A stretch of 64,000 nt of DNA from Heteronotia binoei (lineage: Eukaryota): the NCBI RefSeq assembly GCF_032191835.1, contig NC_083228.1:70866001-70930000 (forward strand), given 5' to 3'. The first letter of the stretch is position 1. Each line of letters starts with the position of its first letter. A program made the position numbers and the translations under genes. A model generated the notes under the pieces. That model saw only the letters and a list, made by a program, of their open reading frames with translations. It was not told where the DNA came from and searched no databases. Positions 13 to 60,400 of the stretch are shown here, piece by piece.

Positions 13-1221
13 ATGCAAAGGGGGGACAACGGGGTTCTGCGCCCCTGCGCCTACATTTCACGAAAGTTCTCGAACGAGCAGAAAAATTGGTCAGTGTGGG
101 ACAAGGAGGCTTTTGCAGTCATGTTTGCCTTGAAAACCTGGCGCTCCTGGCTTGAAGGGGCCAGAGTCCCATTTGAAATCTGGACTGACCACAAAAATCT
201 CGAGGCATTGACCGGGCGCCGCAAAATGACTGCAAAACAAATCCGGTGGGCTGGGTTTTTCGCCAAATTCGACTTTGTACTGAAACACATCCCAGGTACC
301 AAGAATTTCTTGGCGGACGCCCTCTCCCGCCTGCCACAGCATGAGAGCCTCCGCGAGGAGGTGGTGGACTCCCTTATCCCCCCTTCGGCCATCGCGGGGG
401 GGGTCACCACCCGCTCCGGGAAGAGGATCGGTCCCCCGGAGCCAGACCTCTTGTCTCAGTTAGTTGCGGAGACTGCTCGGGAAGCAGACCAACCACCGAA
501 CCTCCGTAAAAGCGAGGACGGCCTCCTGTTGCACAACGAAAAGATCTATGTGCCCTCCTCCCTCCGCAAGCAGATTTTAGAGCATTGTCATTCCAGCCGC
601 CTGGCGGGCCATTTCGGCTATGTCAAAACCCTCAACCTCCTTACCCGACAGTTTTGGTGGCCTAGGCTCAAAAGAGACGTCTCCGAATTCGTCCTCTCAT
701 GTCCCACCTGTCTGATGGCTAAACGAAGAGGGGGTAAACCTCCCGGCCACCTAGTGCCCCTCCCAACAGCCACCCGGCCTTGGTCGGTAGTGTCTATGGA
801 TTTCATTGTGGAGCTCCCGCCGTCGCAGGGCAAAACTGTTATTTTGGTAGTGGTCGATACATTCTCCAAACAAGCCCACTTCATCCCCTGCAAGCAGCTC
901 CCCACGGCTAAAAAACTTGCCCAACTTTTCTTTACACACATTGTACGCCTACACTCGTTCCCAGACAAGGTCATTAGCGACCGCGGGACGCAGTTCGTTG
1001 CCAACTTCTGGCGGGAGTTTTGCAAACTTGCGGGTATTGAGCAGGGCCTCAGCTCAGCCTACCACCCCCAGTCGGACGGACAGACGGAGAGGGTTAATAG
1101 CCTTCAGAACGTAGCTGCGCCGCAATTGTTAAAAAAGTTTCACCTGCTGTACCCGCACAAGCCCAAGCCGCCACCCCCCGGGGGAGGGCGCTTAGGGGGG
1201 GCAGTATGTCAGAACTTGTAA
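13..1221 (+). CDS. pol: Gypsy Pol fragment: RNase H, integrase HHCC and DDE core, fused in frame to the chromodomain tail
   Basis: RNase H motifs CAYISRKF..WDKEAFAV..WTDHKNL; zinc finger H..GHFG..CPTC; DDE in SMDF / ISDRG / QTERVN; ends NVAAPQLLKKFHLLYPHKP, resembling the chromodomain C-terminus. Confidence 0.9.
   Translation: MQRGDNGVLRPCAYISRKFSNEQKNWSVWDKEAFAVMFALKTWRSWLEGARVPFEIWTDHKNLEALTGRRKMTAKQIRWAGFFAKFDFVLKHIPGTKNFLADALSRLPQHESLREEVVDSLIPPSAIAGGVTTRSGKRIGPPEPDLLSQLVAETAREADQPPNLRKSEDGLLLHNEKIYVPSSLRKQILEHCHSSRLAGHFGYVKTLNLLTRQFWWPRLKRDVSEFVLSCPTCLMAKRRGGKPPGHLVPLPTATRPWSVVSMDFIVELPPSQGKTVILVVVDTFSKQAHFIPCKQLPTAKKLAQLFFTHIVRLHSFPDKVISDRGTQFVANFWREFCKLAGIEQGLSSAYHPQSDGQTERVNSLQNVAAPQLLKKFHLLYPHKPKPPPPGGGRLGGAVCQNL
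1180..1206 (+). other. Polypurine tract of the Gypsy element
   Basis: GGGGGAGGGCGCTTAGGGGGGGCAGTA directly before the LTR. Confidence 0.75.
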
Positions 1222-24178: not shown

Positions 24179-26022
24179 TTCAATACCTTCTCTCCTTTTA
24201 AATGTTATTGCTCATCTATCTCCATATTGCCTGTCTCCATATTGTCCATCTCCATACTCTCAGGGCTATTTCCCCCTTGTTCTCATAAGTGCCACACTCA
24301 ATCTTACACTCTCTCTCAACTAGAGATGTAGTTAAGAACTTATTTCTGTCTCTTCTCTTTCACCTAAACTATATACCAGGGAAGGGGAAATTTTGGTCCC
24401 TTTCACACCGTCACTTTATTTCACAGTGAATTAATTTCTCCCCATCTGTATTTAATTGGGATGGTAATGCTTCTTTTTTAATAGCAAATACATCTGCTTG
24501 AAAAACATACCTGGAACATTTCTTCTCTTTCAGATGGCGTTGTGCCTATGTGTTTGGTGTGAAAGTAATTTTCCTTACAAAGGGGTCACTGGATATTGAT
24601 AGTTGACTGACTGCTGAAAAACAAACAAACCACCTTCTACTCAGAGTTGCAAACATGGTAAAAAGTTCATATGAAAAAGAACTTTATGTTTCTGGAAACT
24701 ACTAAATTTTTTTCAAGGGTTATGACAGCCAGTCATAAAATTGCAGTTCAGTGGGTTGAATTAGTCACAAAATGGTAGCTTGTACAAAGCATTCTAAAGC
24801 AAGTCATCAGTGCTGAGGAGGAGAAACCTTTCCTCTGCCATTTTCCTAAAGTAAACCACCACTAACTCCTCAAATTGTAATTTTTCCTGCAGAGGAAAAA
24901 TATAAATCTATCTCTGGAAGCGGCAAATAGCAATTTTTCAGCTATTCACTAGCATGATTCTTTCCTGTCCAGAGTATGTGTGTCCATGTGTATATGAGAA
25001 GAAGGAGGAGGGGAAGAGGCAGATGGGAAAGGGTGCTAGTATGTGTGCATTCTCATTCACATGAAAGAGAAAGAGGAGAGAAGCTGATGCAATAGTTTTA
25101 AAGCGAAGGATAAGAAAGTGATTGCAGAAGTACTGGAAAAAGGAGAATGTAGTCTCTGCAAGCCCGCTGCGTGCCAGCGTGGCTGAGGGGACGATTTGCC
25201 TCCCTTCGGAGGGAGAGCGGCAACTTCGGCGCCTTTCTAGGCGCGTTTTGAGTGGGCGGGGTTTCAGCGCTGTTGCTGAAGCCCCGCTCTTGGCTGGGAC
25301 AGTCTTCCCGGCGTTTTCGGTGGGCGAGGAGCGTGCTTGCACGCTTCCGAGCCCGTCCGAGGTTGCTTTAGGCTGGGAGACTCGTGGAGCGTCGGAGCTG
25401 TGTTGGTCGCTTCGGGTGTGCTGCGGAGCGTCGGGGATCGTCGTGGGACATTTCTTGACGTTTTTATACAGTTTGTGGTGCCCTGGGCACTTAGTGTTGC
25501 CTGATTTGGGCTTTGCTGGATCCCTCTATTTTGGGTGCAATTGGCCAGTGGTGGGAGGTTGTTGTGTTATAGAGGCTCCGGTGCTTGAGCTTTTTGACCC
25601 CCCTCCCCCCCCTCTACCCTGTTGTGTGGGGTGTGCAGCTTAGTGGCTGTTTTAGCAAAAGTGAGGATGGTAGTGTGAGTGGGGCCGTGTGCCTGCCAGG
25701 GTCAGTCGGTTGTTACTGGCTGCCATTAGTGTTTGCTGGGGTGGTTGTTCTTGGCTTCACTGGGGTGGCTGGGCGGCCATTTTAAACTACCTCCTTCTTC
25801 ATTATCCCTGGCGGCCATCTTTGCAGGGATAAAGCGGCGGCCATTTTAGAGGGTTGTGGAATGGCAGCCATTTTAAGGTCGAGGCTTGGCCTGTTTGCCC
25901 TTCACCCCCCCCCCTTTTTTCTTAGTCTATTCGGGCTGGCTTTTTGTTTTAAGGGCTCGCTGCCTGGAGGATTGCACTTCTCCCTTGGAGTAGTTATCTA
26001 GTTGGGTGCTCTTCATTACAGC

Positions 26023-27401
26023 ATGTCGGGCCGCAAAAGTTCTGGGAAGCCTAAGGGGAAGCAGCCGGCCCCTAGGGCCCCCAGGCCGCCGCCGAAGCGC
26101 CCACCGCCACCCTCATCTTCAGATGAGGAAGGTGATGATGATGTCAATGCAGTCATTTTTCAGCGACTTCAGGCATTAGAGCGGGCATCGGGCCTTCCAC
26201 CTTCCCAGATGCCCAATAAGGGGTGGGTCTCCAAGAGGACATTTCAGGCCGACATCCTAACACGCTTGTCTTTTCTTGAGAGCAGATCAACAGCGGCTGC
26301 CGGTGGTGCTGTGGGGCATAGTGGCCTTGACGTTGGTGCTGGCTCATCCTCCGGTGCAGGTTGTGCTGGGTCTGCTTTGGTGCCCTCGGGGCCTTCTGGT
26401 AAGTTTGGGGATGGGTCTTTGTCTCACATGGGGCCTACATGGCCTTGGGGGGCCTGGGGGTCTGCTGGAACTAGTGGGGCTGGCTCTCCTCTAGGGGCCG
26501 CTTCTGCTGCGGGCTTAGATCAGCCTGGCAACTGGTTGGGGACTCAGGGTCAGTGGGGCATGATGGGCCCCTGGCCTGGTGTTGGACAGCAAGGGGCCGG
26601 AGGGGCTTGGCCTGGCTGCTGGGGTTTCCCTTCTCCGTATGGGGCGGTGCCCTTTAGTGCCATGCCTTCCGGTGAGGTCGCCTTACCGTTAGGCGATCAC
26701 TTGCTGCCTGCCACAAAGGAAAAAATTTTGAAGGGGAATAGGTGGATGTATTCTCCCTTTTATATAGAGAGTTAGAGAAAAAGGACAAGGAAGAGCTAGA
26801 CGACAAAGATAAGGAGAAGCTCAGGAAAAGGAAGGTTGAGCGGACCTGGGCCAATTGGCTCCCTGGGTTTCTTATTTATGCGGGGGTTATCGCACGGGCT
26901 CAGCCCTGGCGGGCTGCTGCCTTGATACAATACTTGGACATTGTGTACAAAGGGTACACGATGTTCAGTGGCCTGGCCTGGTGCCAGTATGACCAGGAGT
27001 TTAGAATGCGGGCCGCCTTGTACCCTTCACTCCCGTGGGATCGGATACACCAGCAGTTGTGGCTGCAGGTGATGTCACCGGCTCGGCCCAATTTGGGGGA
27101 GCGATCCGATAGCGGGCACCTTGTTTTGAAAGGTCCCGCTTCCCTGTCTGGTGCGCCCTCTTCCTCCCGCAGTGTTGCGGGGCAGGCGGTTCAACCCCGC
27201 TTGCTCTGCTGGGAGTTTGGGTCCCAAGGGGCTTGCAGTCGAAAGGACTGCCATTTTAAGCATGAATGCCCCTTGTGTGCTGGCCCGCACTCCTTCAGCA
27301 ACTGCCCCAGAGTCCGACCCCGCAAGGGTCAGAAAAAATCAGGCGGGGGCTCTTTCCAGCCTGGTAAAGGGTCCCAGCCCGATAAGGGTGGGGCCTCTTA
27401 G
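26023..27401 (+). pseudogene. gag: Ngaro-1 gag, disrupted at about 26733-26741
   Basis: Alignment to Ngaro-2 (RGEYVDVF) needs one more G in AAGGGGAATAGGTG and even then reads TAG; C-terminal half retains WANWLPGF..YDQEFRMRAA and the CCCH/CCHC cysteine cluster. Confidence 0.88.
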
Positions 27402-30400
27402 TGTGTGGCTACGTAGATACCCACGCAGGGAGGACAGTTGTTATCTTTTGAATGGTTTCACGTTAGGTTTTAGGATTCCTTTTCAAGGTCCTCGGGTACC
27501 AGCTTGGTCCAAGAACCTTAGTTCAGTTGTTGGTCTTGAACATATAGTTAGGGAAAAAATTGCTAAGGAGCTGGCTGAGGGCAGGATTTTGGGCCCCTAT
27601 ACCAGTCCTCCGGTTAGGAATTTTAGGGTTTCCCCGTTGGGGGTGGTGCCAAAGAAAGCACCTGGTGAATTTCGTTTGATTCACCACCTTTCTTATCCTA
27701 AGGGTTCATCGGTCAATGATGGCATACCTGAGGAGCTTTGCTCCGTTAGGTATACCTCTTTTGATCAGGCCGTGGGCGTCGTGCGACGCTGTGGTCAGGG
27801 GGCTGAGATGGCAAAATGCGATATCAAGTCGGCATTTCGCCTTCTCCCTGTCCACCCGGACGATTTTGAGTTGCTGGGCTTCTCGTTTGCGGGGCAGTAC
27901 TACATGGACAGGGCATTGCCTATGGGGTGCTCTGTTTCTTGCGCTGCTTTTGAGTGCTTCAGCACATTTTTGGAATGGGCTGTGCGTGAAAAAGTGGGCT
28001 TGCAGGAGGTCGTTCATTACCTGGACGACTACCTGTTTGTGGGCCCCGCAGGCTCAGGCCGCTGCGCTCAGCTGCTAGCTGGCTTTGTTGATTTGGCCGC
28101 TGAGTTGGGCGTGCCGTTGGCAGAGGAGAAGACAGAGGGCCCAGCCCAACGCCTTGTTTTTCTCGGGATTGAACTAGATACTCTGGAGCAGTCATCTAGG
28201 ATTCCTGAGCCGAAGCTGCTGGATTTGAAGGAAAGGATTAACTCCTTTCTGTGTAAAAAGAAGGTTACGTTGCTTGAATTGCAGCAGCTAGTGGGGCACC
28301 TTAACTTTGCCTGCAAAGTGGTCGCCCCGGGTAGGCCTTTTCTGCGCAGGTTCTGTGATGCTATGGCGGGCCTTCGCGCGCCTCATCACAAGACCAGGGT
28401 TACTAGCAGCATGAGGGAGGACCTGCGGATGTGGCAGGAGTTTTTGGAATCCTTTAATGGGATTTCATTTTGGAGAGAGGAACTGAAGCTTGAGGTGGAG
28501 CTTCAGGTCATGTCAGATGCTGCTGGGTCACTTGGTTTTGGAGTCTACTTCCGTGGACACTGGTGCATGGAAGAGTGGCCTGAGTCGTGGGTGCAGGCCG
28601 GTTTAAACAGGGACCTCACTTTTTTGGAATTCTTTCCTATTTTAGTTGCAGTTTGGCTGTGGGGGAATGATATGGTGAATTGCACCGTGCATTTTTGGTG
28701 CGATAACATGGCTGTGGTTCATGTTATTAATTCCCTTACATCCAAATCTTCACGGGTTATGAGGTTGGTACGGGCCTTCACTCTGTGTTGCCTGCGGCTT
28801 AACATTCTGTTTTTGGCCAAGCATGTTCCTGGGGTTAATAACGGGGTGGCTGACGCTCTCTCTCGTAAACAGATGGAGAGGTTTCGTCAGCTGGCCCCAG
28901 ACGCCGATCTGGATGCGGTGCCAATGCCCCAGGAGCTGTGGCTGATTGGAGAGCCGAGGCCTACAGAGCCATAGGTCTAGCCATTGCTCCCAGCACCAGG
29001 AGGTCTTATGAGCGTGCCGTGCGGCAGTTTGAGGACTTTAGGGCTGAGGTAGGGTATCGTATTGTTTGGCCCCTCCCAGTGGAGCAGTTGCTCCACTACT
29101 GTGTTTATCTAAGAGGTAAGGGACTGGCCGTGCGATCAATTCGGGGGCGTATGTCTGCGTTGGCCTTCGCCAGTAAGGCTTTGGGGTTCAAGGAAGAGAC
29201 AGCAGATTTTCGTATTCGAAAGATGCTGGAGGGGTGGTCCAGGGAGGCTGGGCCTGTGACTGATACTAGGGCCCCTGTGTCTCCTGAGATTCTTCGGGGA
29301 TTAAAAGGGGTATGGAGCGCAGTTTGTGCGTCTCCTTTTGAAGTAGTTTTGTTCCACGCAGCCTCTCTAGTGGCCTTTTTTGGGGCTTTGAGGGTTAGCG
29401 AGCTGGTGGCAAGCTCCAAGAGTGCTGTTTCCGGTAGGGCGTTGTTGCTTAGGGATGTTAAGTTGCTGGCGGGTAAGGTGGTCCTTACTGTCCGGCGATC
29501 CAAAACTGATCAGGTGGGCACGGGGACAGTGCTGCAGTTGGGTCCGTGTTCAGAGGTGGAGCTTTGCCCAGTGGCCGCATTGGTTGACTATTTGGCTGTG
29601 CGGGGAGGCTGCGCGGGATTGCTGTTTTGTCATGAGGGAGGTAGTCCCCTGACAAAGCATCAATTTTGGACAGTGACATCAAAGGCCTTAGCCCTGTTGG
29701 GGTTGTCCGGAATTAGGTTTGGCACCCATTCCTTTAGAATTGGGGCAGCTTCTACAGCTGCGGCCTTGGGTTATTCCGCTTCGGCCATCCAACGCCTTGG
29801 CCGTTGGCGTTCCCAGGCTTATAAAGGTTATATTCGCCCCATGCTCCGCTAACGGTTTTAGGGAGTAGCTTGGGGGCGTTGAGGTTTGGTTTATACAACT
29901 GTTTGTTTCTTTCTTTTAGATGCTGTGGTTCCTGGCCGGAGGAGCAGAGTTCTCATCTGCGGGCACAGTTATGTGTTCTGGGCGGCACATCAGGCTCGGA
30001 AAACTGCTGTTGGCTCACAGCTGGGGCTCAGCAAATATGTCACGATAGAGTGGAGGGGACGCCATGGGCTTCAGTGGCCCGGCTTGCTCTCCCTTTTGTT
30101 TCACGGGTCCGGGGCCCCTCCTCCGCAGGTATTGATTATTCACCTGGGAGGGAACGATCTCGGGCTGATTAAAGGCAAGGCGTTGATCTTGCAGGCCCGG
30201 GATGATTTCAGGTACATAAGGAACAGATGGCCTGGTACCATTATAGTTTGGTCGGCCATGATTCCACGCTTGGAGTGGTGTTGTGCCTGGAATCCAGCTG
30301 GGTTGGAGAGGGCTCGCTACCGAGCGAATAAGGAAATTCGCAAGGTTTTGGAGGGTGGCTTGGGTCACTATTTGCCCCATCCAGATATTTCTAAGGAATG

Positions 30401-30521
30401 TCCCGACCTCTACAGAGGGGATGGAGTGCATCTCTCGGAAAAGGGTAATATGCTTTTCCTGAGAGATTTACGGCAAGGGCTCTTGTCGGTTTGGGGTTTT
30501 TCTGTGGGTGCTAAGCCCTAA
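26023..30521 (+). CDS. Predicted spliced GagN-SGNH fusion, join(26023..26398,29920..30521), 325 aa
   Basis: Donor CTG|GTAAGT and acceptor TTTTAG|AT are both phase 1; junction reads GPS-D-AVVPGRRSRVLICGHS. Confidence 0.72.
27151..28974 (+). CDS. pol: Ngaro-1 reverse transcriptase / RNase H, +1 frame overlapping the gag end; true start unknown
   Basis: RLIHHLSYP, KCDIKSAFRLLP, LPMGCS, HYLDDYLF; RNase H SDAAG / LEFFP / WCDN / ADALSR. Confidence 0.95.
   Translation: MRPLPPAVLRGRRFNPACSAGSLGPKGLAVERTAILSMNAPCVLARTPSATAPESDPARVRKNQAGALSSLVKGPSPIRVGPLSVWLRRYPRREDSCYLLNGFTLGFRIPFQGPRVPAWSKNLSSVVGLEHIVREKIAKELAEGRILGPYTSPPVRNFRVSPLGVVPKKAPGEFRLIHHLSYPKGSSVNDGIPEELCSVRYTSFDQAVGVVRRCGQGAEMAKCDIKSAFRLLPVHPDDFELLGFSFAGQYYMDRALPMGCSVSCAAFECFSTFLEWAVREKVGLQEVVHYLDDYLFVGPAGSGRCAQLLAGFVDLAAELGVPLAEEKTEGPAQRLVFLGIELDTLEQSSRIPEPKLLDLKERINSFLCKKKVTLLELQQLVGHLNFACKVVAPGRPFLRRFCDAMAGLRAPHHKTRVTSSMREDLRMWQEFLESFNGISFWREELKLEVELQVMSDAAGSLGFGVYFRGHWCMEEWPESWVQAGLNRDLTFLEFFPILVAVWLWGNDMVNCTVHFWCDNMAVVHVINSLTSKSSRVMRLVRAFTLCCLRLNILFLAKHVPGVNNGVADALSRKQMERFRQLAPDADLDAVPMPQELWLIGEPRPTEP
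28938..29852 (+). CDS. Ngaro-1 tyrosine recombinase
   Basis: Catalytic set LRVSEL (R), SKTD (K), HSFRIG (H-x2-R), GRW (W), YKGY (Y). Confidence 0.95.
   Translation: MADWRAEAYRAIGLAIAPSTRRSYERAVRQFEDFRAEVGYRIVWPLPVEQLLHYCVYLRGKGLAVRSIRGRMSALAFASKALGFKEETADFRIRKMLEGWSREAGPVTDTRAPVSPEILRGLKGVWSAVCASPFEVVLFHAASLVAFFGALRVSELVASSKSAVSGRALLLRDVKLLAGKVVLTVRRSKTDQVGTGTVLQLGPCSEVELCPVAALVDYLAVRGGCAGLLFCHEGGSPLTKHQFWTVTSKALALLGLSGIRFGTHSFRIGAASTAAALGYSASAIQRLGRWRSQAYKGYIRPMLR
29920..30521 (+). CDS. Ngaro-1 SGNH/GDSL hydrolase (esterase) exon
   Basis: Block I ICGHS, block III LGGND, block V DGVH; preceded by GTTTGTTTCTTTCTTTTAG. Confidence 0.92.
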
Positions 30522-48085: not shown

Positions 48086-48380
48086 ATAGAAATGAAAGGT
48101 AACAATTCAAACGTATAAACAAAGCCTGAACAGCAAATTAGCATGTAACATGATAAAGATGTTTTAAGAGATGGAGAGACAGAATAGGAATAACAAATTA
48201 CATTTCTAAGGTTAAAAGTTGTTTGGTTTTAATTAAGGGGAAACAACAGTGAAGCAATAAATATGTCAAAATAGGAGATAAATGTGTTAAAGTATCCTTT
48301 CTAATTGTTGGAAGTTAACTGCAACTCTGTTGCTATGCTCCATTTGTTTTCTCTGAAGCATGGAGATCACAAACAGCATT

Positions 48381-48776
48381 TGCCCCCCCAGTCGGAAAGA
48401 AGAGGCAGACACAGTTGTTGGGTTTAAAACCGGGCCGCTTTATTAACATTAACAAAAATAACTGGCAGGGGGAAGGAAACAGACCAGACAAGCCCTGGGG
48501 TCAACACCTGGACCCCGCCTTGTCCAAAGGGCGAGCCACCCTGCCCCCAGCACAAACCCGCCGTGATCGGGTTGTAACTGAGCGGCCAGGCCTCCAGCCA
48601 TCACCAACCGGGCTGGAACAATCCCCATGGAAAGATCCACCCAGGTGAGGCTCCCTGTGTTCTGCATCACCGTACTGAGCCGTTTAGCCCATCTACGGTT
48701 CCTGCAGACACCGCACCAAAGGTGCTAGGCCATAGGTGCTCCCCTGGAAAACCCTGTGGCCAAACCTAATCCAGCC
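48381..48776 (-). repeat. Ngaro-2 repeat B2 (396 bp), AATAAA at 48444-48439
   Basis: Matches 49121-49516 with one mismatch seen (48517 G / 49257 A). Confidence 0.95.
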
Positions 48777-48938
48777 TGCGACCAAACTAGAACACAACAG
48801 AAGCTAACCTAATAGGCAATACAAGGTAGGCGAAAAACACCCCAGCAAAGGCCAATTGTGCGGGAGTGAAAAAATTCCTACCTGGCCCCAAAAGGCAACC
48901 GGTATACACCTGTACTGCCAATGGGAAGGGTGGGCGGG

Positions 48939-49120
48939 CAGAGAGCCGAAATCAAACTGCGTGCTAGGGCGGGAGCCGGGGCTTATATAGCCCCGCCTCC
49001 ACGCCCGGCCAAGCACCCGTATATCGGGTGATTCTTCCACCCCTCCCTCCTTCCGGAGGGGCAAAGACGGCCCCCAGCCTATGGCCTGCAAGCAGGCTTG
49101 GCTGGGAAGGGGCCGAACCT
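48939..49120 (-). repeat. Ngaro-2 repeat A2 (182 bp)
   Basis: Matches 54922-55103 with one mismatch seen. Confidence 0.95.
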
Positions 49121-49516
49121 TGCCCCCCCAGTCGGAAAGAAGAGGCAGACACAGTTGTTGGGTTTAAAACCGGGCCGCTTTATTAACATTAACAAAAATA
49201 ACTGGCAGGGGGAAGGAAACAGACCAGACAAGCCCTGGGGTCAACACCTGGACCCCACCTTGTCCAAAGGGCGAGCCACCCTGCCCCCAGCACAAACCCG
49301 CCGTGATCGGGTTGTAACTGAGCGGCCAGGCCTCCAGCCATCACCAACCGGGCTGGAACAATCCCCATGGAAAGATCCACCCAGGTGAGGCTCCCTGTGT
49401 TCTGCATCACCGTACTGAGCCGTTTAGCCCATCTACGGTTCCTGCAGACACCGCACCAAAGGTGCTAGGCCATAGGTGCTCCCCTGGAAAACCCTGTGGC
49501 CAAACCTAATCCAGCC
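49121..49516 (-). repeat. Ngaro-2 repeat B1, abutting A2 (circle-junction sequence GGGCAA/GGTTCGG)
   Basis: Direct copy of B2 at an offset of 740 bp. Confidence 0.95.
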
Positions 49517-49519
49517 ACC

Positions 49520-49550
49520 GCCAATGCCAAGCCTCTGCTTAGGCATTAGC
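49520..49550 (-). other. Conserved RNA hairpin with AGAG loop at the SGNH stop (Ngaro-2)
   Basis: GCTAATGCC(T)AAGC-AGAG-GCTTGGCATTGGC, 13 pairs with one bulged U. Confidence 0.72.
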
Positions 49551-50141
49551 GCCCCACCGGGTGGCCCAGAGCCAACCGCACCCCCTGCCGGATTTCATCC
49601 AAAAAGGCCCGGTTACCCAAATTAGATAAGTGAACGCCATCGGGCCGATACAGGTCAACTTGCTCGACCCGTATGGCCGGATGAGGGAGGTATATTCCTA
49701 ATCCCTCCTCCATGGCCTTCTGAATGGCCCTATTGGCCTTACGTCTGGCCCGCTCGATTCCCCCCGGGGAAATGGCGTACCTCCACACCCTACGCGGCAA
49801 AATTGCGGACCATACCAATACGACCCCAGGCCACCTGCGACGAATTTCGCGGAGGTCAGCCAACGCCTGCTGGGACAGAGCCTTCCCCTGCAGCAGACCC
49901 AAGTCGTTCCCGCCCAGGTGAACGACAAGAATGTGTGGAGGTAATGCCTTCCGCTCCAGGAATAAGAGTGGCATGATGCCGGGCCAGCGCAGCCCCCGAC
50001 GACCCAGCCATTCGACAGTGGCCCATTCACTGAGACCCAGCTGGGTGCCCACAGGAGACCGCCTGGAGAAATGGGCAGCCCAAAAAACCATGCTGTGCCC
50101 GCAGATGAGAACCCGCCGTCTCTCACCCCGAGCCACAGCAC
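49546..50141 (-). CDS. Ngaro-2 SGNH hydrolase exon
   Basis: ICGHS, LGGND, DGVH; preceded by GCTGAC-TGTTGTTTGTTTTTTCAG. Confidence 0.92.
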
Positions 50142-53100
50142 CTGAAAAAACAAACAACAGTCAGCAAAGTGCCCAACAGTTAACCAACCCCCCCCCACCT
50201 ACCTGTTAGGCGACCAGGGGGCGTACATAAGACCTATAAGCCGCCGAGCGCCAACGACCGATACGCTGAATGGCCGAGGGCGTGTAGCCCATAGCAGCAG
50301 CTGTGGAAGCCGCCCCAATCCGGAAGGAATGCGTCCCAAATTTGACGCCAGTGAGACCCAATCGAACCAGGGCCTTACTTGTGACAGACCAAAACTGATA
50401 TTTGGTAAGAGGAGAACCGTCATCATGCCTGAGAAAGGGACCTAGGGCCTCGCCCCTGAGTTGGGCGTAACGGCGAACGGCCCTGACCGGACATAATTCC
50501 TGCAAAGCACACATGCCGATCGTGATGACGGTTCCCCTCTGCCTCTGATCAGTCTTGGACCTGCGAATCGTCAGAACCAGCTGACTATTGGTGATTTTTA
50601 CATCTCCGGATTGGAGCGCCCTACCAGACGTGTCAGCTTTTGACTGCACTACGAGCTCACTTACGCGCAGGGCCCCAAAGAAGGCCAACAACGAGGCAGC
50701 GTGGAATAGCGCCGACTCAAATGGGGAGGAACAGACCCTGGACCAACCCCCAAACAATCCGCGGAGGACTGACGGGGATATGGGCTGTCTGTCATCTACC
50801 TGACGCACCCGCTCACGAGACCACCCTTCAAGCATCTTCCTAACCCTAAAATCTCCGGTGGGCTCCGTGAGGCCCCGAGCCTTTCTTACAAAGGCCAACG
50901 CTGCCAATTGTCCCTTTATGGTTTTTAGCCCCAGGCCTCTTTCCCTTTGATGCACGCAAAATTGCATGATGTGCTCAACTGGGATTGGCCAGGAATCCGG
51001 GAGTGCTACAGCCCCCCTAAACTCACCAAATTGGGCAGTCGCTCTGGCATATGCCCTCCTCGTACTAGGTGCTAGCGCCAACTGAATGGCCCTACCGGCT
51101 TCTTGTTCCCAAGCCTCCAGAGTTCCGCGGGCATTTCCGCCGGACATGAATCTGCCTCTGGGGCCAACAGCCGGAAACGCTCCATCTGTTGGCGAGACAG
51201 AGCATCCGCCACACCATTGCAAACCCCCGGTACGTGCCTAGCCAGGAATAATACATTCAACCGGAGGCAACGCAGGGTAAAAAACCTAACCAGATTCATG
51301 ACCGCAGCCGATTTTGAAGTCAAGGAGTTGATAACATGTACTACAGCCATGTTATCACACCAAAACAGAACTGAATGGTTGGCAAGCTGCTCTCCCCACA
51401 GGCAAACGGCCACCAAGATGGGGAAAAATTCCAGAAACGTGAGGTCTCTACAGAGCCCGCTTTCCAACCAGTCAGCAGGCCATTGCTCGGCACACCAATG
51501 GCCCCTGAAGTATACCCCAAAACCACTAGCCCCGGAAGCATCCGAAGAAATTTGAAGCTCAGCCTCAATCTTAAGTTCCTCCCTCCAAAAGGAAACCCCA
51601 TTGAAGGAGTCAAGGAACTCCTCCCAAACCTCCAAATCCGCTCTCATTCCGGCATTAACACGGACCCTATGGTGAGGGAGGCGCAGCCGGCCCATGGCGT
51701 CACAAAAGCGTCGCAAAAAGGCCCTGCCTGGGGCCACCACTTTGCAAGCAAAGTTAAGGTGGCCCACCAACTGCTGTAATTCTAAAAGGGAAACCTTCCG
51801 CTGCCCCTTCAAGGCGGCCAACCGATTTCTAAGGTCGGAGACCTTATTCTCCGGTAAACGTGATGTCTGCTGGAGAGTGTCCAGCTCAATACCTAGAAAA
51901 GTAAGAACCGTGCTGGGGCCCTCGGTTTTTTCGTGAGCCAGCGGCACACCAAGCTCGAGGGCCAACCCCTGAAAGGAGCGTAACAACCTGTCGCATTGAC
52001 CCGATCCTGCGGGACCTACAAAAAGGTAATCGTCAAGGTAATGCGCCGTGTCGTTAACCCCCGTCCTAACCCTGAGCGCCCATTCCAAAAAGGAACTGAA
52101 TCGCTCGAACGCTGCACAGGAGATGGAACATCCCATCGGCAAAGCCCGGTCCATGTAGAATTTCCCTTCAAAGGAAAAACCCAATAACTCAAAATCATCG
52201 GGGTGTACCGGCAAGAGGCGAAATGCAGACTTAATGTCGCATTTTGCCAACTCCGCCCCCATCCCGCATCCGCGAACTACTTTGACCGCCTGGTCAAAGG
52301 AAGTATAACGGACTGAACAAAGTTCCTCAGGGATAGCATCGTTCACCGAAGCTCCCCTGGGATAAGACAAATGGTGTATAATCCTATACTCACCGGGTGC
52401 CTTTTTGGGAACCACCCCCAAAGGGGATACCCTCAATGTGGGCACAGGCGGTACATCAAAGGGGCCAAGGACCCTGCCTTCCTGGCATTCTTTAGCAATT
52501 TTTTCCCGAACCACATGTTCGAGTCCAACCACCGATTTAAGGTTGGGAGCTACAAAGGGGGCCCTACGCCCCCTGTACGGGATCCGAAACCCCAGCGTAA
52601 AACCGTCCAGTAAATACCTGGCATCGGCCCTACAGGGATATGCGACCAATAACCTACTGAGAGCCGGAAGGCGGATGGGGCTGGGCCCCTTTTCCAGGTG
52701 GCGGTGCACCGCCACCGCCGCCTCCGGGACGCTTACCGCCCGGTCCGGGCTTGGATCTACTGCAGGCTGACAATGAGTGGGGCCCACTGCACAGGGGACA
52801 TTCGTGACGGAATTTACAGGGCTTCCTGGGACAAGCCCCCTTGGAAGCGAATTCCCAGCACAACAACCGGGTTTGAACCGGCTGGCCCGCGGAAACGCGG
52901 GCAGCTGGGGAGGCCTGCTGTTGCTGTGATCTCTGCACCAGGTGGCCGCTGTCGGACCTATCCCCAGCATTTGGTTTTGCTGGAGCCATCAGCTGCAACC
53001 ACAGCTGCTGGTTTATTTGGTCCCACGGCATTGCCGGATTGACGGCAGCCCGCATCCGGAAGGCTTCGTCATACTGCAGCCAAGCTGCCCCGGCGAAGTC

Positions 53101-54183
53101 CGTATAAGCCCTATAGATTATGTCCACGTATTGAAAGAGGGCGGCCGCCCTAGCCGGCTGCGCTCTTGCAATGACCCCGGCGTAAATCAAAAAACCGGGC
53201 AACCAGTTTGCCCAAGACCTATCGATCTTCCTACGCTTTAGTTTTTCCTTGTCCCTGTCGTCCAGCTCGTCCTTACTTTTTCTCTCGAGCTCTCTGAACA
53301 GGAGACCAAAAACATCCACGTACTCCCCGCGGAAAATTTTCTCCCGCGTGGCCGGCGTCAGATGATCCCCCAACGGCAACGAAGTGTCGCCGTAGGGAAA
53401 GGCGTGAAAGGGGATGCTAGCATAGGGATCTGGGGGGTAAAACCACCCGCCCACTTGAGCTGCGGGCCATGGCCCCCGCAACTGCGCCCCCTGCAGGCCA
53501 CCCCAAGGCAAAAAGCCAGGTGTGGGCAGTGAGGTGGGGGCTGCATGCGGTACCCCAGCGCCCACCTGTTGGCCCATAGGGGCAGGAACTGCGTTTGACG
53601 ACAAACTGGAGGTATGTGGCCCCCAAGCCCATGGCTGAGCGGAACCCACCTGCTCACTGGCGCCTAGCCACCCAGGTCCCCATCCCAACCCACTCGGCCC
53701 CGGCAAATGAGGGGTCGGCTGGGCGAAGCCCCAAGGCCACCCGGGAACTGGCAGAGAAATAGGCTTACCACCATCACCAGGAAAGGCGCCCGGACCTCCA
53801 GAAGGCTGCGGTCCACCACTTCCCGATGCCCCTGCACCCGATGGCGCACCTGATGGGCCTTCGCCAGGGTCCTCATCTTGATCAGGTTCCAACGGCGCAT
53901 CGGGCTCCGACTGCCCCTCCTGTAAAGCAGACAGCCTTGCCAGTAATTCAGTTTCAAAAGTTAGCCGGGCCGACCTTCCAGTGGCACGGCGACGGCCCTC
54001 CCAGATGGGTGCACCTCTGGCCACACGCTCCTGTTCCAGAGCTTCCAATTGACTGATAATGGCGAGACGAACTCGCTCATTCTGATCCTGCTCCTCAACA
54101 GGGGCACCTTGCTGGCCCCTCCCCCGAGGTGGGCGGGCGGGCTGCTTGCCCTTAGACTTGCCCTGTCCCTTTTTAGGAGCCAT
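49546..54183 (-). CDS. Predicted spliced GagN-SGNH fusion, complement(join(49546..50141,53769..54183)), 336 aa
   Basis: Donor GTG|GTAAGC and acceptor TTTCAG|GT are both phase 1; junction reads GDG-G-AVARGERRRVLICGHS. Confidence 0.72.
50206..51222 (-). CDS. Ngaro-2 tyrosine recombinase
   Basis: LRVSEL, SKTD, HSFRIG, GRW, YRSY. Confidence 0.95.
   Translation of the reverse strand: MQWCGGCSVSPTDGAFPAVGPRGRFMSGGNARGTLEAWEQEAGRAIQLALAPSTRRAYARATAQFGEFRGAVALPDSWPIPVEHIMQFCVHQRERGLGLKTIKGQLAALAFVRKARGLTEPTGDFRVRKMLEGWSRERVRQVDDRQPISPSVLRGLFGGWSRVCSSPFESALFHAASLLAFFGALRVSELVVQSKADTSGRALQSGDVKITNSQLVLTIRRSKTDQRQRGTVITIGMCALQELCPVRAVRRYAQLRGEALGPFLRHDDGSPLTKYQFWSVTSKALVRLGLTGVKFGTHSFRIGAASTAAAMGYTPSAIQRIGRWRSAAYRSYVRPLVA
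51072..52970 (-). CDS. pol: Ngaro-2 reverse transcriptase / RNase H; true start unknown
   Basis: HYLDDYLF, KCDIKSAFRLLP; RNase H SDASG / LEFFP / WCDN / ADALSR. Confidence 0.95.
   Translation of the reverse strand: MLGIGPTAATWCRDHSNSRPPQLPAFPRASRFKPGCCAGNSLPRGLVPGSPVNSVTNVPCAVGPTHCQPAVDPSPDRAVSVPEAAVAVHRHLEKGPSPIRLPALSRLLVAYPCRADARYLLDGFTLGFRIPYRGRRAPFVAPNLKSVVGLEHVVREKIAKECQEGRVLGPFDVPPVPTLRVSPLGVVPKKAPGEYRIIHHLSYPRGASVNDAIPEELCSVRYTSFDQAVKVVRGCGMGAELAKCDIKSAFRLLPVHPDDFELLGFSFEGKFYMDRALPMGCSISCAAFERFSSFLEWALRVRTGVNDTAHYLDDYLFVGPAGSGQCDRLLRSFQGLALELGVPLAHEKTEGPSTVLTFLGIELDTLQQTSRLPENKVSDLRNRLAALKGQRKVSLLELQQLVGHLNFACKVVAPGRAFLRRFCDAMGRLRLPHHRVRVNAGMRADLEVWEEFLDSFNGVSFWREELKIEAELQISSDASGASGFGVYFRGHWCAEQWPADWLESGLCRDLTFLEFFPILVAVCLWGEQLANHSVLFWCDNMAVVHVINSLTSKSAAVMNLVRFFTLRCLRLNVLFLARHVPGVCNGVADALSRQQMERFRLLAPEADSCPAEMPAELWRLGNKKPVGPFSWR
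52654..54183 (-). CDS. gag: Ngaro-2 Gag-like ORF1 (509 aa from the ATG)
   Basis: Basic N-terminus, two amphipathic helices, W/P/G-rich linker, WANWLPGF..YDEAFRMRAA, C-x7-C-x4-C-x3-H followed by C-x2-C-x3-H-x4-C. Confidence 0.92.
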   Translation of the reverse strand: MAPKKGQGKSKGKQPARPPRGRGQQGAPVEEQDQNERVRLAIISQLEALEQERVARGAPIWEGRRRATGRSARLTFETELLARLSALQEGQSEPDAPLEPDQDEDPGEGPSGAPSGAGASGSGGPQPSGGPGAFPGDGGKPISLPVPGWPWGFAQPTPHLPGPSGLGWGPGWLGASEQVGSAQPWAWGPHTSSLSSNAVPAPMGQQVGAGVPHAAPTSLPTPGFLPWGGLQGAQLRGPWPAAQVGGWFYPPDPYASIPFHAFPYGDTSLPLGDHLTPATREKIFRGEYVDVFGLLFRELERKSKDELDDRDKEKLKRRKIDRSWANWLPGFLIYAGVIARAQPARAAALFQYVDIIYRAYTDFAGAAWLQYDEAFRMRAAVNPAMPWDQINQQLWLQLMAPAKPNAGDRSDSGHLVQRSQQQQASPAARVSAGQPVQTRLLCWEFASKGACPRKPCKFRHECPLCSGPHSLSACSRSKPGPGGKRPGGGGGGAPPPGKGAQPHPPSGSQ

Positions 54184-54921
54184 CACTAACAGGTGACAAG
54201 CAATGAAGCAAAGTTGGGGCTAACTGGCCAGTCAGGGGGCCCTTTCCACACCACCCCCCTCCCAGTAGGAGGAGATGAATGCCCCCACCAAAGAGGTGGT
54301 GCAACTACCCCTCCCCAGCCCCACACAACACCAAACTTATCAAAAGGCCGTGCAGGAAAGGAAAAATCTGGTGTCTTCTGCAGGCAAAACGGAGACAGTT
54401 ACACTGCCCCTAGAACCTTCCAACCCACACCGGACGGGAAGGAATGAGGAGATAGGAAGCTACCCAAGGCACAAGCTCCTGCCTTCCAGGCCAGTTAAAA
54501 GGAAACAGAGGGAGGGGGGGGGTGTATTTCAGCGACTGGAAACCCGGCCCACCCCCTTAGGAAGGAAACCCCGGGAGAAGGCCACCACCAATATGCAGCC
54601 AGCAGACCCGGCTCCTTTTACTGGGGCCGTTCCACGCCGCCCTCTAGCCTCCCCCCAGACCCTCCGATAATCGTGCTGTTCGCCGCGCTACTCAGCCGCC
54701 GCAAGCGCGTCCCCGTGGCAACGCCTCCCAGCCGCCCAACAGCTGATTCCTGAAGTGCCGCCTGTAAATCGCCGCCGCAAGCGCGCCTCGCCGCGCCAAG
54801 AGCCCGCCGACCAGCTGGTCCTCAGAAGCTCGCCGCGCCTCTACCGTCGACCGCTGCACGCGCTCGTCACCCAAGCTGCCCAGGCCTAGCCCTGCAGCAG
54901 CCGACCAATGTGGCTCTCGCA

Positions 54922-55103
54922 CAGAGAGCCGAAATCAAACTGCGTGCTAGGGCGGGAGCCGGGGCTTATATAGCCCCGCCTCCACGCCCGGCCAAGCACC
55001 CGTATATCGGGTGATTCTTCCGCCCCTCCCTCCTTCCGGAGGGGCAAAGACGGCCCCCAGCCTATGGCCTGCAAGCAGGCTTGGCTGGGAAGGGGCCGAA
55101 CCT
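54922..55103 (-). promoter_or_regulatory. Ngaro-2 repeat A1 with Pol II core promoter
   Basis: TATATAA at 54972-54966 inside GGGGCT..AGCCCC; Inr-like GCAGTTT with the A at 54941, 31 nt downstream. Confidence 0.8.
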
Positions 55104-56123
55104 TTTTTCTTTGTTGGGGTGGGATGCAGTGTTATTTATGTCAGAAAGAGACATTTTAATTTTTATTGCATTGCATTACAATCACTATTCCAATATACCA
55201 GGGTTTCCCAAACTTTTTTCCCATGGCCTGGTTACATTTACACTTCTCCTTCATGGCCCATGAAAATTCAGGGGTGGAGCCAGGAGACTTTGGGGGTGGA
55301 GCTGGGAGATAGGAAATGATGTCATTTCCTGTGATGTTACTTCCAGGTCAAGGGCCAAGAGATGTCACTTCTAGGGCACACTGAATCAAAACTCCACCTC
55401 TTCCTGTGATGTCATTTCCAGGGCACTCCCCCAAACCTGCCTCTTCTTCTGAAGTAACTTCATTTTCAGAAAAATTTATATGAAATCCATGCTGAGCCAA
55501 GTGGGCGGTCTGCAACTTGTTAATACATTCCCAGGGTCCTCTCTTTCCACTCCAACACCTGCATGCACCTATCTGTTTGTGTATTCTTCTCCAGCTTGCC
55601 AGCACTCCTAATGCCCATGTTCAATTGCCTGCACCACCTACACACCCCTTCCTCAACAGCACTGGCCATTGTATGAAGTTGGGACTGCTGTTGCCATTGC
55701 CATCAGGAATGCCAGCACTGTGTACCACCCATAGTGGGCCCTGACAGCTGCTCTACCTCAAAATATGCTGATGCATTTAGTAGGCTGCTAAATCCTACCT
55801 TCAGCTGCTACTACTGGAACCCTGCCTCAAGCTACAACCAAGCTCACTTGGTTTCAAACAAATCTTTTGACAGTTATTTTTCAAACTTTTCCTTGGCTGA
55901 AGCACTAGGAAATTGCTGTGAAAGGTAGCAGAGAATTGTACTGCAATTAATGAATTAATTTCAAGTTATATGAAGTCCATACAAGCTTATCTGCTGCTAT
56001 CCCAAAAAGGATATTTATGAGAGACTTGCAGCTTTTTACTGGCTGTGTTTCCCATGCCTTTAAAAGCAACCTTTAATTAAGCAGTTATTAATCAACACTT
56101 TGTCAAAGATGGAGAAGCTCCTT

Positions 56124-57483: not shown

Positions 57484-60400
57484 AAAGATCTTTCATTCCT
57501 GTAATTTGATCGATGTTTGGCGAACTTTAAACCCTAAAAGCAGAGACTATACCTTTTATTCAAATGTTCATATCTCTTATTCTAGAATTGATTTTTTCTT
57601 AGTTTCTCCTTCGCAGATCAATATGTTTGAAAATGTGAGTATTGAAGTACGAAGTATTTCAGATCACTCTCTGGTGCAGTATGACCTGCCAGCTCAGGAT
57701 TCAGACGGAAAAAGCCCTAACTGGTCCCTCAACAAATTACTTTTATCCAAATTATCCAATCTTACTTTTCTTAAATGCTCAGTGTGGTGTACCCCAAGCC
57801 TATGTATGGGATGCCTTTAAAGCCGTGATGAGAGGTAATTTCATTTCCATTGCCTTGGCGTGTAATAAAGCCAAACGGAAATCAATTGAATACGTAAATA
57901 CCCGTATTGCTTCATTACAAGCCAAACATTCTAAATATGGTGGTAAAAAACCCCTGGAAAAACTAAATCAGGCCAGAAAACAATTAAAATTATTAGAATC
58001 TTCCTCAACCCAGAATTTTTTTTTAGTTCTTAAACAAAGATACGTAACTAAAACCTCAAAATCAATTAGACTTTTGAAGCATTGTATTGCTCAGAAAAGG
58101 TCTCAGAATATGATCCATGCTATTAGAACCCCACAGTTCTACACTCATCTTCTAAAAAGATCTCTGAAACCTTTTTATACAAAGTTATATGAGTCAACTA
58201 ACCCAATCCACACCAAATTGAGAACTATTTACGCACTATTGATTTTAAATCTTTCCTCTCAGATGAGCACTCATCTTTTTTATACAGACCTTTTAATTTG
58301 ACTGAGTTAAGCTCAGTTATCTCCAAGATAAAAAATAATAAGGCTACGGGGAGAGACAGCTTCCATATAGAATTCTATAAACATTTTAAATCTTATTTGT
58401 TAATGCCATTGCTGGATATCTGCAACTCAGTAATGGAATAAGGTTGCCTTCCCTCAAGCTGGTTAAAATCATGGATGATTGTAATTCCCAAACAAGGAAA
58501 AGACAAACTTAATCCCGCCTCCTGTCATCCTATTTCGGTTTTGAACCATGATTTTTTTAAAAAATTCTTCTTTACTTGCAGAGCGTTTGAAAAAGATTAT
58601 CACCCATTATATCCACCCTGGCCAGGCAGGTTTTATGCCGGGTCGTACCATTACCGACAACATTCGTAAATCACTCAATCTGATCCACATAGCAAAGTCT
58701 TCTCAGGTTCCTCCATTAATCCTCTCCCTAGACACCGAAAAAGCATTTGATAAAGTCGAAGTAAATTACTTAAAAACCTTACTAAAATATATGCATTTTG
58801 GTCCACGTTTTTTGAAATCTACTTTTGCTATTTACAGTTCTCCCTCAACACAAATCTCTACTAGCATCTTTAGATCAGATGAGTTACATCTTCATAGAGG
58901 TACCCAGCAGGGTTGCCCCCTCTCCCCACTTTTATTTGCCCTTACTGTTGAACCCTTTGCTTATGTAATCCAGAATTCTTCAGAAATTGCAGGTATTTCA
59001 GTTAATAACGTTGTCTATAAATCAAGTCTTTTTGCTGATGACATGGTTTTTTATCTAAGTAATCCCTTTAACTATCCTCAAAGAAAAACTAGATGAATTT
59101 AGTAAATTCTCAGGACTTTCGATCAATTTTAATGTCTGGAATATACCCGATTAATGTCGCTCAGAAGCTACAGGGTTACGAAAATATGGAGACATCTGGG
59201 TATCTTATTTCCGTTGAACCTATCGGACTTATATAAGGTTAATTATGGACCTGTAAGTAAGTCTATGACTTTGACTCAAGGGGAATGGTAAAAACTAAAT
59301 CTCTCTATTCTAGAAAAAATAGATCTTAAATCTTTTCTTCTTCCTCGTCTTCTCTTTTTGTTCCAAAATCTCCCGATACCAGTCTTAAGAAAAGACTTAA
59401 CAAGCTGGCAATCACAGTGGACCTCCTTTTTATGGAATAATCAGAAACCGAGAATTGCTTTATCACTTTTAGCGAAACCTCGTAAAATGGGTGGTTTAGC
59501 AGTTCCACTAATTGATATTTTGTGGCAGTCCAAATGAGACATACTGTACTGTACGCATCTCCTTACTTGACTCCCATATGGGTTCAAATTGAAAAAGCTG
59601 ATCTACCTAATGTGTTATTGCATGGATTCATTTGGCATACCAAAACTGACAAAAGGAGTATGCTTTGTCTAATCCATTTCTTAAATTCACATTGCAAATA
59701 TGGGACCAATGGAGAAACACTCTGTCTCCAGCCCCCTCACCTATAATGGCCTTTTTGGGTCAGTCCTGGTTTCCCCCAGGAAAGGACAATAATCAATTCA
59801 AAGTGTGGAGGAATAATAATATATTCAAACTTATGGATATAACAACTAATGGTAAATTGAGTACCCTCCCCCAACTGGAGCACAAATTTAAAATTTCTAT
59901 CCCTTATCAATATATTCAAATACACCATGCTCTACACCAAATAATCCCAATAATTATGGCTAATAGATCGCTTAACCCTCTGGAAAAATTAATTAACAAA
60001 AGCTGTACTTCAATAAGGGGGGTTATTTCAATTATATATCTTTTAAATCTACCAGTTTGGTCAAATATGTCCAGTCAGCAAGTAGCCTGGCAGAAAGACT
60101 GTCATAGTACAATTAATGATGACCAATGTGAACAAATTTGGTTATCAGCTTTATTTAAATCCAAATCTTATTATTTTTGGTTACAGAACTACAAGATCTT
60201 TGCAAGGTGGTATGCCACTTCTTGCAGGCTTTATAAGGGCAAAGTGAAAAAAATCCAACTTGTTGGAAAGGTTGTGGGCAGATGGGAACTTTCATTCACT
60301 GCTGGTGGGAGTGTACTGAGATCAAAGCATTCTGGGCAGAAGTACTGGGAAAAATTACAGAAATAACAGGGATTATAATACCATTCACACCAGAATCTCC

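Follow-up and report, generated by a model that had tools for sequence, protein, structure and literature searches.

A splice donor within gag and two alternative acceptors predicted for a Ngaro retrotransposon of Heteronotia binoei

A stretch of 64,000 nucleotides (nt) of the Heteronotia binoei genome (assembly GCF_032191835.1, contig NC_083228.1, positions 70,866,001 to 70,930,000 of the forward strand; hereafter the window) carries two diverged Ngaro retrotransposons, Ngaro-1 on the plus and Ngaro-2 on the minus strand. The RNA of Ngaro-2 appears to contain one 5' splice site (donor) inside gag, a phase-1 site after codon 138, together with a choice of two 3' splice sites (acceptors), by which the N-terminal part of Gag (Gag-N) would be joined either to the SGNH/GDSL esterase of the element (Gag-N::esterase) or to its tyrosine recombinase (YR; Gag-N::YR). 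We give this reading a probability of roughly 0.72; within it, the joint of Gag-N to YR is probably used.

The donor, GTG/GTAAGC (the slash marks the exon end), lies well within gag: from the ATG at 54183 to the last exon base at 53769 there are 415 nt, i.e. 138 codons and one base, which sets the phase to 1. In the gag frame the site encodes Gly-Lys and stands 11 residues upstream of a WPWG motif, in a linker that is otherwise unalignable between the two window copies, the exon-1 proteins of which are merely 37% identical. The esterase acceptor is made up of a CTGAC branch point, the 15-nt pyrimidine tract TGTTGTTTGTTTTTT (50159-50145, minus strand) and CAG. On joining, the G at 53769 and the GT at 50141-50140 form GGT (Gly) and the SGNH frame is read on, so that the predicted spliced product has 138 + 198 = 336 amino acids (aa). 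The first in-frame Met of the SGNH frame comes straight after the Ser of its GHS motif, and upstream of the acceptor the frame is open for 6 codons only, being closed by the TGA within CTGAC. All these features of Ngaro-2 (donor, branch point, tract, CAG, phase, an intron of 3627 nt, the 336-aa product, the Gly-Lys coding before WPWG, the unalignable linker and the ATG placed behind the nucleophile) had been put forward in a preliminary description of the sequence, and reading of the minus strand bore them out. Its claim that the acceptor is homologous to that of Ngaro-1 held as well: exon 2 starts 13 residues before GHS in both copies, the donor of Ngaro-1 being CTG/GTAAGT (phase 1) and its esterase acceptor TTTCTTTTAG, while the proteins of the two elements share 59-67% identity. 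In a rough position-weight score, used for ranking only, the esterase acceptor is the best of about 308-330 AGs in both window elements. The gag of Ngaro-1 is frameshifted (open reading frames, ORFs, at 26002-26775 and 26742-27401, plus strand); its exon 1, both acceptors, YR and esterase are still open.

Searching with the esterase alone returned many RefSeq proteins of 320-345 aa, named "uncharacterized LOC", from Eublepharis, Rhineura, Anolis, Elgaria, Hemicordylus and Heteronotia. They begin with the N-terminus of gag: its basic KKG..KGK sequence, an acidic SSDDE patch and two RLxALE helices. Five RefSeq models (Eublepharis, Anolis, Rhineura, Hemicordylus, Heteronotia) were mapped to DNA and form, with the two window copies, a set of seven squamate elements. 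Each of the seven has a phase-1 G/GT donor 370-421 nt after the ATG, and each has an acceptor with a pyrimidine tract and CAG or TAG 13-15 codons before GHS. The intron measures 3451-3574 nt in the five mapped models (3451-3627 nt in all seven elements) and contains the gag core, the reverse transcriptase (RT) and YR. The same architecture is seen in a copy from the toad Spea bombifrons (GGTG/GTGAGT ... TTTTTTTCTTTTTACAG; a phase-1 intron of 3695 nt that encloses remnants of RT and YR), where the joint is the last intron of a three-exon model and the acceptor lies about 8 codons before the block I nucleophile motif. In this toad copy (L011:8100-8707) block I reads GNS instead of GHS; in the related Heteronotia copy described below (L010) it reads GRS. 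Consensus splice sites that join the downstream ORF in frame are thus present in eight copies, and the survey of donor, acceptor and phase in other squamates and in amphibians that the preliminary description had proposed found a phase-1 G/GT donor and a tract-bearing acceptor in every copy mapped. An exhaustive profile search gave 3096 representative clusters, and the ten inspected added fused models from Anolis sagrei, Pogona, Podarcis and Paroedura and from the anurans Xenopus, Leptodactylus, Engystomops and Spea; RefSeq models with the Gag-N::esterase structure come from about 14 genera, with the RNA support behind the models not visible. A Cyprinodon model (P0045/L006), considered as a further test of the Ngaro intron, was dropped: its SGNH terminal exon does stand behind a tract acceptor, but the intron holds no RT or YR.

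The position of the esterase frame relative to the upstream YR ORF is not conserved. The offsets between the two frames are 0, 0, 2, 1, 0 and 2, and where the frames agree they are separated by 1-3 stops. The splice, with its constant phase-1 link to gag, is the only conserved frame link for SGNH. In six of the seven squamate elements no ATG precedes the nucleophile codon in the SGNH frame. The exon is under purifying selection, the ratio of non-synonymous to synonymous substitution rates (dN/dS) being 0.13-0.15 where dS is unsaturated, compared with 0.34-0.48 for exon 1. The inference made in the preliminary description, that retention of both sites and of the phase reflects selection on the spliced product, gains support from the eight copies, the varying YR-SGNH offset and these ratios.

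The second, candidate acceptor, ...GCTCTGTCTCGCCAACAG, lies in front of YR, at the opening of the YR frame, and would use the same donor; joined to it, the donor of Ngaro-2 would give a predicted Gag-N::YR protein of 464 aa. A second isoform annotated at the Hemicordylus locus (P0088, 449 aa) joins the same exon 1 to ...CTCTCTCGGATGCAG within the 3' end of the RT/RNase H (RT/RH) region and reads into YR. The homologous CAG is found in both window elements and in the loci L001 and L007, phase-1 compatible with the YR frame in all of them. In Ngaro-1 (acceptor 28850-28873, plus strand) the YR frame opens only one codon before the acceptor, after TAA 28866-28868, and has no ATG before the conserved core; the YR frame of L007 likewise opens one codon before the site. 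RefSeq Gag-N::YR models of 449-494 aa, with junction residues that fit the YR acceptor, occur in Eublepharis, Anolis sagrei, Pogona, Elgaria, Hemicordylus and Tiliqua, and anuran YR models have long N-terminal extensions of the same kind as those of the anuran esterase models.

By sequence and by model exon 2 of Ngaro-2 is an SGNH/GDSL esterase, with predicted activity. All four blocks of these hydrolases (Ser, Gly, Asn, His) are present in the window ORF as GHS, GRRG, GGND and DGVH, and are invariant in 16 homologues. An AlphaFold (AF2) model of the homologue P0004, built on a 16-sequence alignment, has a disordered basic N-terminus, helices at residues 38-56 and 80-95 (confidence score pLDDT 65-78), a disordered linker (96-148) and a confident SGNH domain (pLDDT about 80-96). 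Prediction of a homodimer from two copies of gag residues 28-100 scored 0.02, which gives no answer either way.

Ngaro-2 itself is an intact, recently inserted tyrosine-recombinase retrotransposon (Table 1). All four of its ORFs (gag, RT/RH, YR and SGNH esterase) are open. A repeat search found the split direct repeats of Ngaro, a group of the DIRS order: A1 (55104-54922) equals A2 (49121-48939) over 183 nt at 99% identity, and B1 (49419-49120) equals B2 (48679-48380) over 300 nt at 100%; since the copies are 99-100% identical the insertion must be young. The homologues of its YR (E down to 1e-143) are named integrase/recombinase XerD homolog. A Pfam scan of the element found no domains beyond RVT_1, Phage_integrase and PF13472, neither DDE integrase nor methyltransferase among them, and RT/RNase H with a tyrosine recombinase and without these two is the combination that defines the Ngaro class. 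The window also holds other retroelement remains, namely a Gypsy-type RNase H/integrase ORF at its start (13-1221, plus strand) and an RT fragment near 58.5 kb (58548-59096, plus strand).

Table 1. Features of the two Ngaro elements, in window positions
Feature	Positions	Strand	Remarks
Whole Ngaro-2 element	48380-55104	-	Split direct repeats A1...B1-A2-B2, ORFs, Pfam domains
gag ORF	52654-54183	-	509 aa from ATG 54183; Cys/His-rich stretch at C-terminus
RT/RNase H ORF	51072-52970	-	632 aa; Pfam RVT_1, E 3.1e-11
YR ORF	50206-51222	-	Pfam Phage_integrase, 25.1 bits, slightly below the 27.1-bit cut-off
SGNH/GDSL ORF	49546-50157	-	Pfam PF13472, E 2.6e-11, 44.8 bits (cut-off 32.9)
Coding exon 1	53769-54183	-	gag codons 1-138 and first base of Gly codon; basic N-terminus, two RLxALE-type helices
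5' splice site	53763-53771	-	GTG/GTAAGC, phase 1; exon end 53769, intron start 53768
Predicted intron	50142-53768	-	3627 nt; contains gag core, RT/RH, YR
Candidate alternative 3' splice site (YR)	51185-51210	-	...GCTCTGTCTCGCCAACAG; AG 51187-51186, exon start 51185; phase-1 compatible with YR frame
Esterase-exon 3' splice site	50142-50164	-	CTGAC 50164-50160 (A 50161), tract 50159-50145, CAG 50144-50142
Exon 2, SGNH/GDSL esterase	49546-50141	-	198 aa including split Gly; stop 49546-49548
Ngaro-1 counterpart	26023-30521	+	ATG 26023; exon 1 26023-26398; esterase exon from 29920; YR-acceptor exon start 28873

Several observations weigh against the proposed splicing. The donor of Ngaro-2 ranks only 7th of 314 GTs in the rough position-weight score (that of Ngaro-1 is first of 313), and a stronger, out-of-phase GT (CAG/GTGGGT, 53650, minus strand) lies 119 nt downstream of it. 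This latter site, at a distance of 534 nt from the gag ATG, is in phase 0 and is frame-incompatible with either acceptor. Gene predictors always return frame-compatible sites and the evidence lines of the RefSeq models are not visible; in favour of the models, alternative isoforms and chimeric first exons from the NCBI pipeline are as a rule backed by RNA alignments. The YR acceptor overlaps the conserved RT/RH motif ADALSRxQ, and because of this overlap its CAG could be kept for coding alone; moreover, the YR of Ngaro-2 has its own in-frame ATG at 51146. Nor can retention of the donor be credited to the esterase product alone, since the acceptor in front of YR shares it. Finally, the split reads at 53769^50141 that the preliminary description had proposed to look for did not appear: four small metatranscriptome contig sets containing element parts, aligned at 90% likeness, show neither this joint nor 53769^51185, with exon 1 hardly covered. 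Exon 1 has a depth of 0.5-3 there whereas the esterase region and the 3' end are covered, a pattern which is not what an abundant spliced mRNA of the exact window copy would give, although contig depth cannot rank regions and the 90% filter has to be set against a gag region that in the related L010 copy is 83% identical to the window.

In one of these runs (X4) a contig of depth 15 joins 52646 to 50164 (minus strand), with 2481 nt skipped and no GT..AG at the ends; rather than splicing, its source may be a transcribed deletion derivative similar to the L010 copy. The gag-N::SGNH junction is in neither of two Logan/ENA contigs, L008, which is uninterpretable, and L009, which looks unspliced because the pyrimidine-tract acceptor still stands in front of the esterase.

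The strongest competing explanation, which we nevertheless regard as unlikely, is that the esterase is made from unspliced RNA, through non-AUG initiation, reinitiation after YR or readthrough, the GT and AG being incidental and the RefSeq models products of the predictors. The silence of the four RNA contig sets speaks for it, as do features of the sequence: immediately before the Ngaro-2 esterase acceptor there are CTG and TTG codons (50160-50155), SGNH is in the YR frame in Ngaro-1, Ngaro-2 and L005, and in L007 two in-frame ATGs precede the acceptor by 8 and 14 codons. However, among the elements at large the YR-SGNH offset differs and stops intervene where the frames agree, and because of the varying offset readthrough of the YR stop was rejected as a general mechanism. 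The stretch open before the acceptor amounts to just 6-12 codons in three elements, a strong pyrimidine tract and AG stand at the same place in all eight copies, that of the toad included, and an unrelated chimeric gene model of Heteronotia makes use of the homologous donor.

A little less probable still is that the splice sites are real and the donor is kept mainly for the expression of YR or for limiting the amount of full-length RNA, the Gag-N::esterase mRNA being a tolerated by-product and the fused module having no role. The sharing of the donor with a conserved YR acceptor, Gag-N::YR models at least as widespread as the esterase ones, and the fast evolution of exon 1 (30-48% identity, with the dN/dS given above) would all agree with this. 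Yet no other start is evident for the esterase, the constraint on its exon is strong, and among squamates the position of the acceptor relative to GHS is fixed within 2 codons. That the 336-aa product belongs to a host gene domesticated from Ngaro is very improbable: RefSeq does list such products as ordinary LOC genes, and in teleosts a related SGNH domain does form the C-terminus of a conserved protein of some 2000 aa, but the window copy sits inside an element with four open ORFs and split repeats 99-100% identical, there are many copies per genome, and the introns of the RefSeq models contain the gag core, RT and YR.

The chimeric Heteronotia model just mentioned (RefSeq "TRIM42", P0053/L010) was the single match of a search with the gag N-terminus, a region too diverged for word-based retrieval to return more. 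The first 95 residues of this model are a gag of the Ngaro-2 family; from the homologous donor, ...GGTG/GTAAGCC, it leaves the element for a TRIM42 exon 21.7 kb downstream. The copy at this locus (L010:1375-4850) is 83-90% identical to the window copy (83% in the gag region, 90% in the 3' part, with an identical esterase 3' splice site sequence); it has lost most of RT and YR and keeps gag, the acceptor and a decayed esterase, and the TRIM42 model owes its first coding exon to the gag donor of this copy. Two long host-gene RefSeq models, P0183 (Elgaria, ZNF318-like) and P0185 (Eublepharis, SRRM2-like), end in a Ngaro esterase domain, as if the acceptor-led esterase exon behaved like a terminal-exon trap. 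In teleosts of at least 7 orders a protein of about 1700-2040 aa (zebrafish-style name si:dkeyp-121d4.3; P0237, P0238, P0257, P0274, P0280, P0290, P0246 and L006:10066-10698, some annotated as cold-shock-domain proteins) has a C-terminal SGNH domain related to the Ngaro esterase; the acceptor-led esterase exon may have been domesticated there long ago. The Ngaro sites thus look like ready-made first and last exons that can be joined to host genes, of which the TRIM42, ZNF318-like and SRRM2-like models look like examples.

Under the proposed splicing, full-length Ngaro-2 RNA would have a single 5' splice site in gag and two alternative 3' splice sites. Left unspliced, it would be translated into Gag and RT/RH and would also be the template that is reverse-transcribed. 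A splice to 50141 would remove the gag core, RT/RH and YR and leave one protein made up of the N-terminal module of gag, a linker and the esterase, whereas splicing to 51185 would yield Gag-N::YR. In both the shared N-terminal exon would provide the start codon, and its basic, helical module may let the two enzymes travel or assemble with Gag; this role of the module, like the use of the sites in this genome, is what we infer. As the same logic appears to cover the recombinase, the expression of Ngaro elements may depend on alternative splicing much as in complex retroviruses. We tentatively suggest, at somewhat worse than even odds, that vertebrate Ngaro elements are "complex" retrotransposons with a gag-N-tagged recombinase and esterase, in which Gag-N::esterase corresponds in function, and perhaps also in descent, to the coiled-coil-esterase ORF1 protein (ORF1p) of CR1/L2 long interspersed nuclear elements (LINEs). 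For annotation, it follows that many "uncharacterized LOC" models should be recognised as Ngaro products.

Ngaro-like YR retrotransposons with a fourth, SGNH-hydrolase ORF, such as Xenopus DIRS-53_XT, are attributed to Goodwin and Poulter (2004) in two later papers, where the hydrolase is an extra ORF "with no proven function" (PMC9210276, PMC7192593). Like Ngaro-2 these elements have the order gag, RT/RH, YR, SGNH, repeats of the form A1...B1-A2-B2 and no methyltransferase domain. The open literature searched, with the founding 2004 paper outside its scope and an earlier mention therefore possible, makes no mention of a Ngaro intron, of splicing or of a spliced mRNA. For twenty years the hydrolase has been an extra ORF with no known function or stated route of expression; the conserved splice to the gag N-terminus would supply such a route, and the defined protein of 336 aa predicted from it lends itself to production and assay.

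Spliced subgenomic mRNAs are a known strategy of retroelements: they express env in retroviruses and in gypsy-type errantiviruses and pol in foamy viruses, and the plant Ogre elements have an intron. The scheme proposed here would bring this strategy into the DIRS order, where the literature searched does not describe it. It resembles the known cases in having one 5' splice site near or in gag, 3' sites before the downstream genes, and an unspliced RNA that is the genome. It differs in that the Ngaro-2 donor lies 415 nt inside the coding sequence of gag and would produce in-frame Gag-N fusions. Unlike in the env cases, the downstream genes are an esterase of intracellular type and a recombinase, in an element of the DIRS order.

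For the esterase itself, a Foldseek search with the modelled domain gave 2hsj, 3dt6 and 1wab as best matches (SGNH, platelet-activating factor acetylhydrolase (PAF-AH) type, E about 1e-7), and some of its UniRef homologues are named 1-alkyl-2-acetylglycerophosphocholine esterase. On the model, PAF acetylhydrolase Ib alpha and bacterial PAF-AH-like SGNH hydrolases thus appear closest in structure, with 16-20% sequence identity, and sequence search at E<0.01 does not retrieve them. The sole genuine match of a sequence search against the PDB is 4c1b (E 1.2e-4 with a single sequence, 1.6e-6 with a profile), the esterase (ES) of ORF1p of the zebrafish CR1/L2-clade LINE ZfL2-1, to which the Ngaro esterase is homologous. 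This ORF1p starts with a coiled coil, which a basic linker connects to the SGNH esterase, and its ES is an active esterase that binds acidic phospholipids (PMC3905857); the same paper makes no mention of Ngaro or DIRS elements. The spliced Ngaro product, with two predicted N-terminal helices, a linker and the esterase, would be of similar layout and size, the sequence similarity being shown for the esterase part alone. ORF1p, however, is one contiguous ORF, the first of a non-LTR (long terminal repeat) retrotransposon, while the Ngaro protein would have to be assembled by splicing in a YR retrotransposon. In its predicted layout Ngaro-2 therefore resembles the class of esterase-type LINE ORF1p and is not a member of it. 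The sequence link connects two unexplained retrotransposon esterases; were Gag-N::esterase the functional counterpart of ORF1p, a lipid- or membrane-dependent step would be common to two unrelated orders of retrotransposons and conserved from anurans to squamates.

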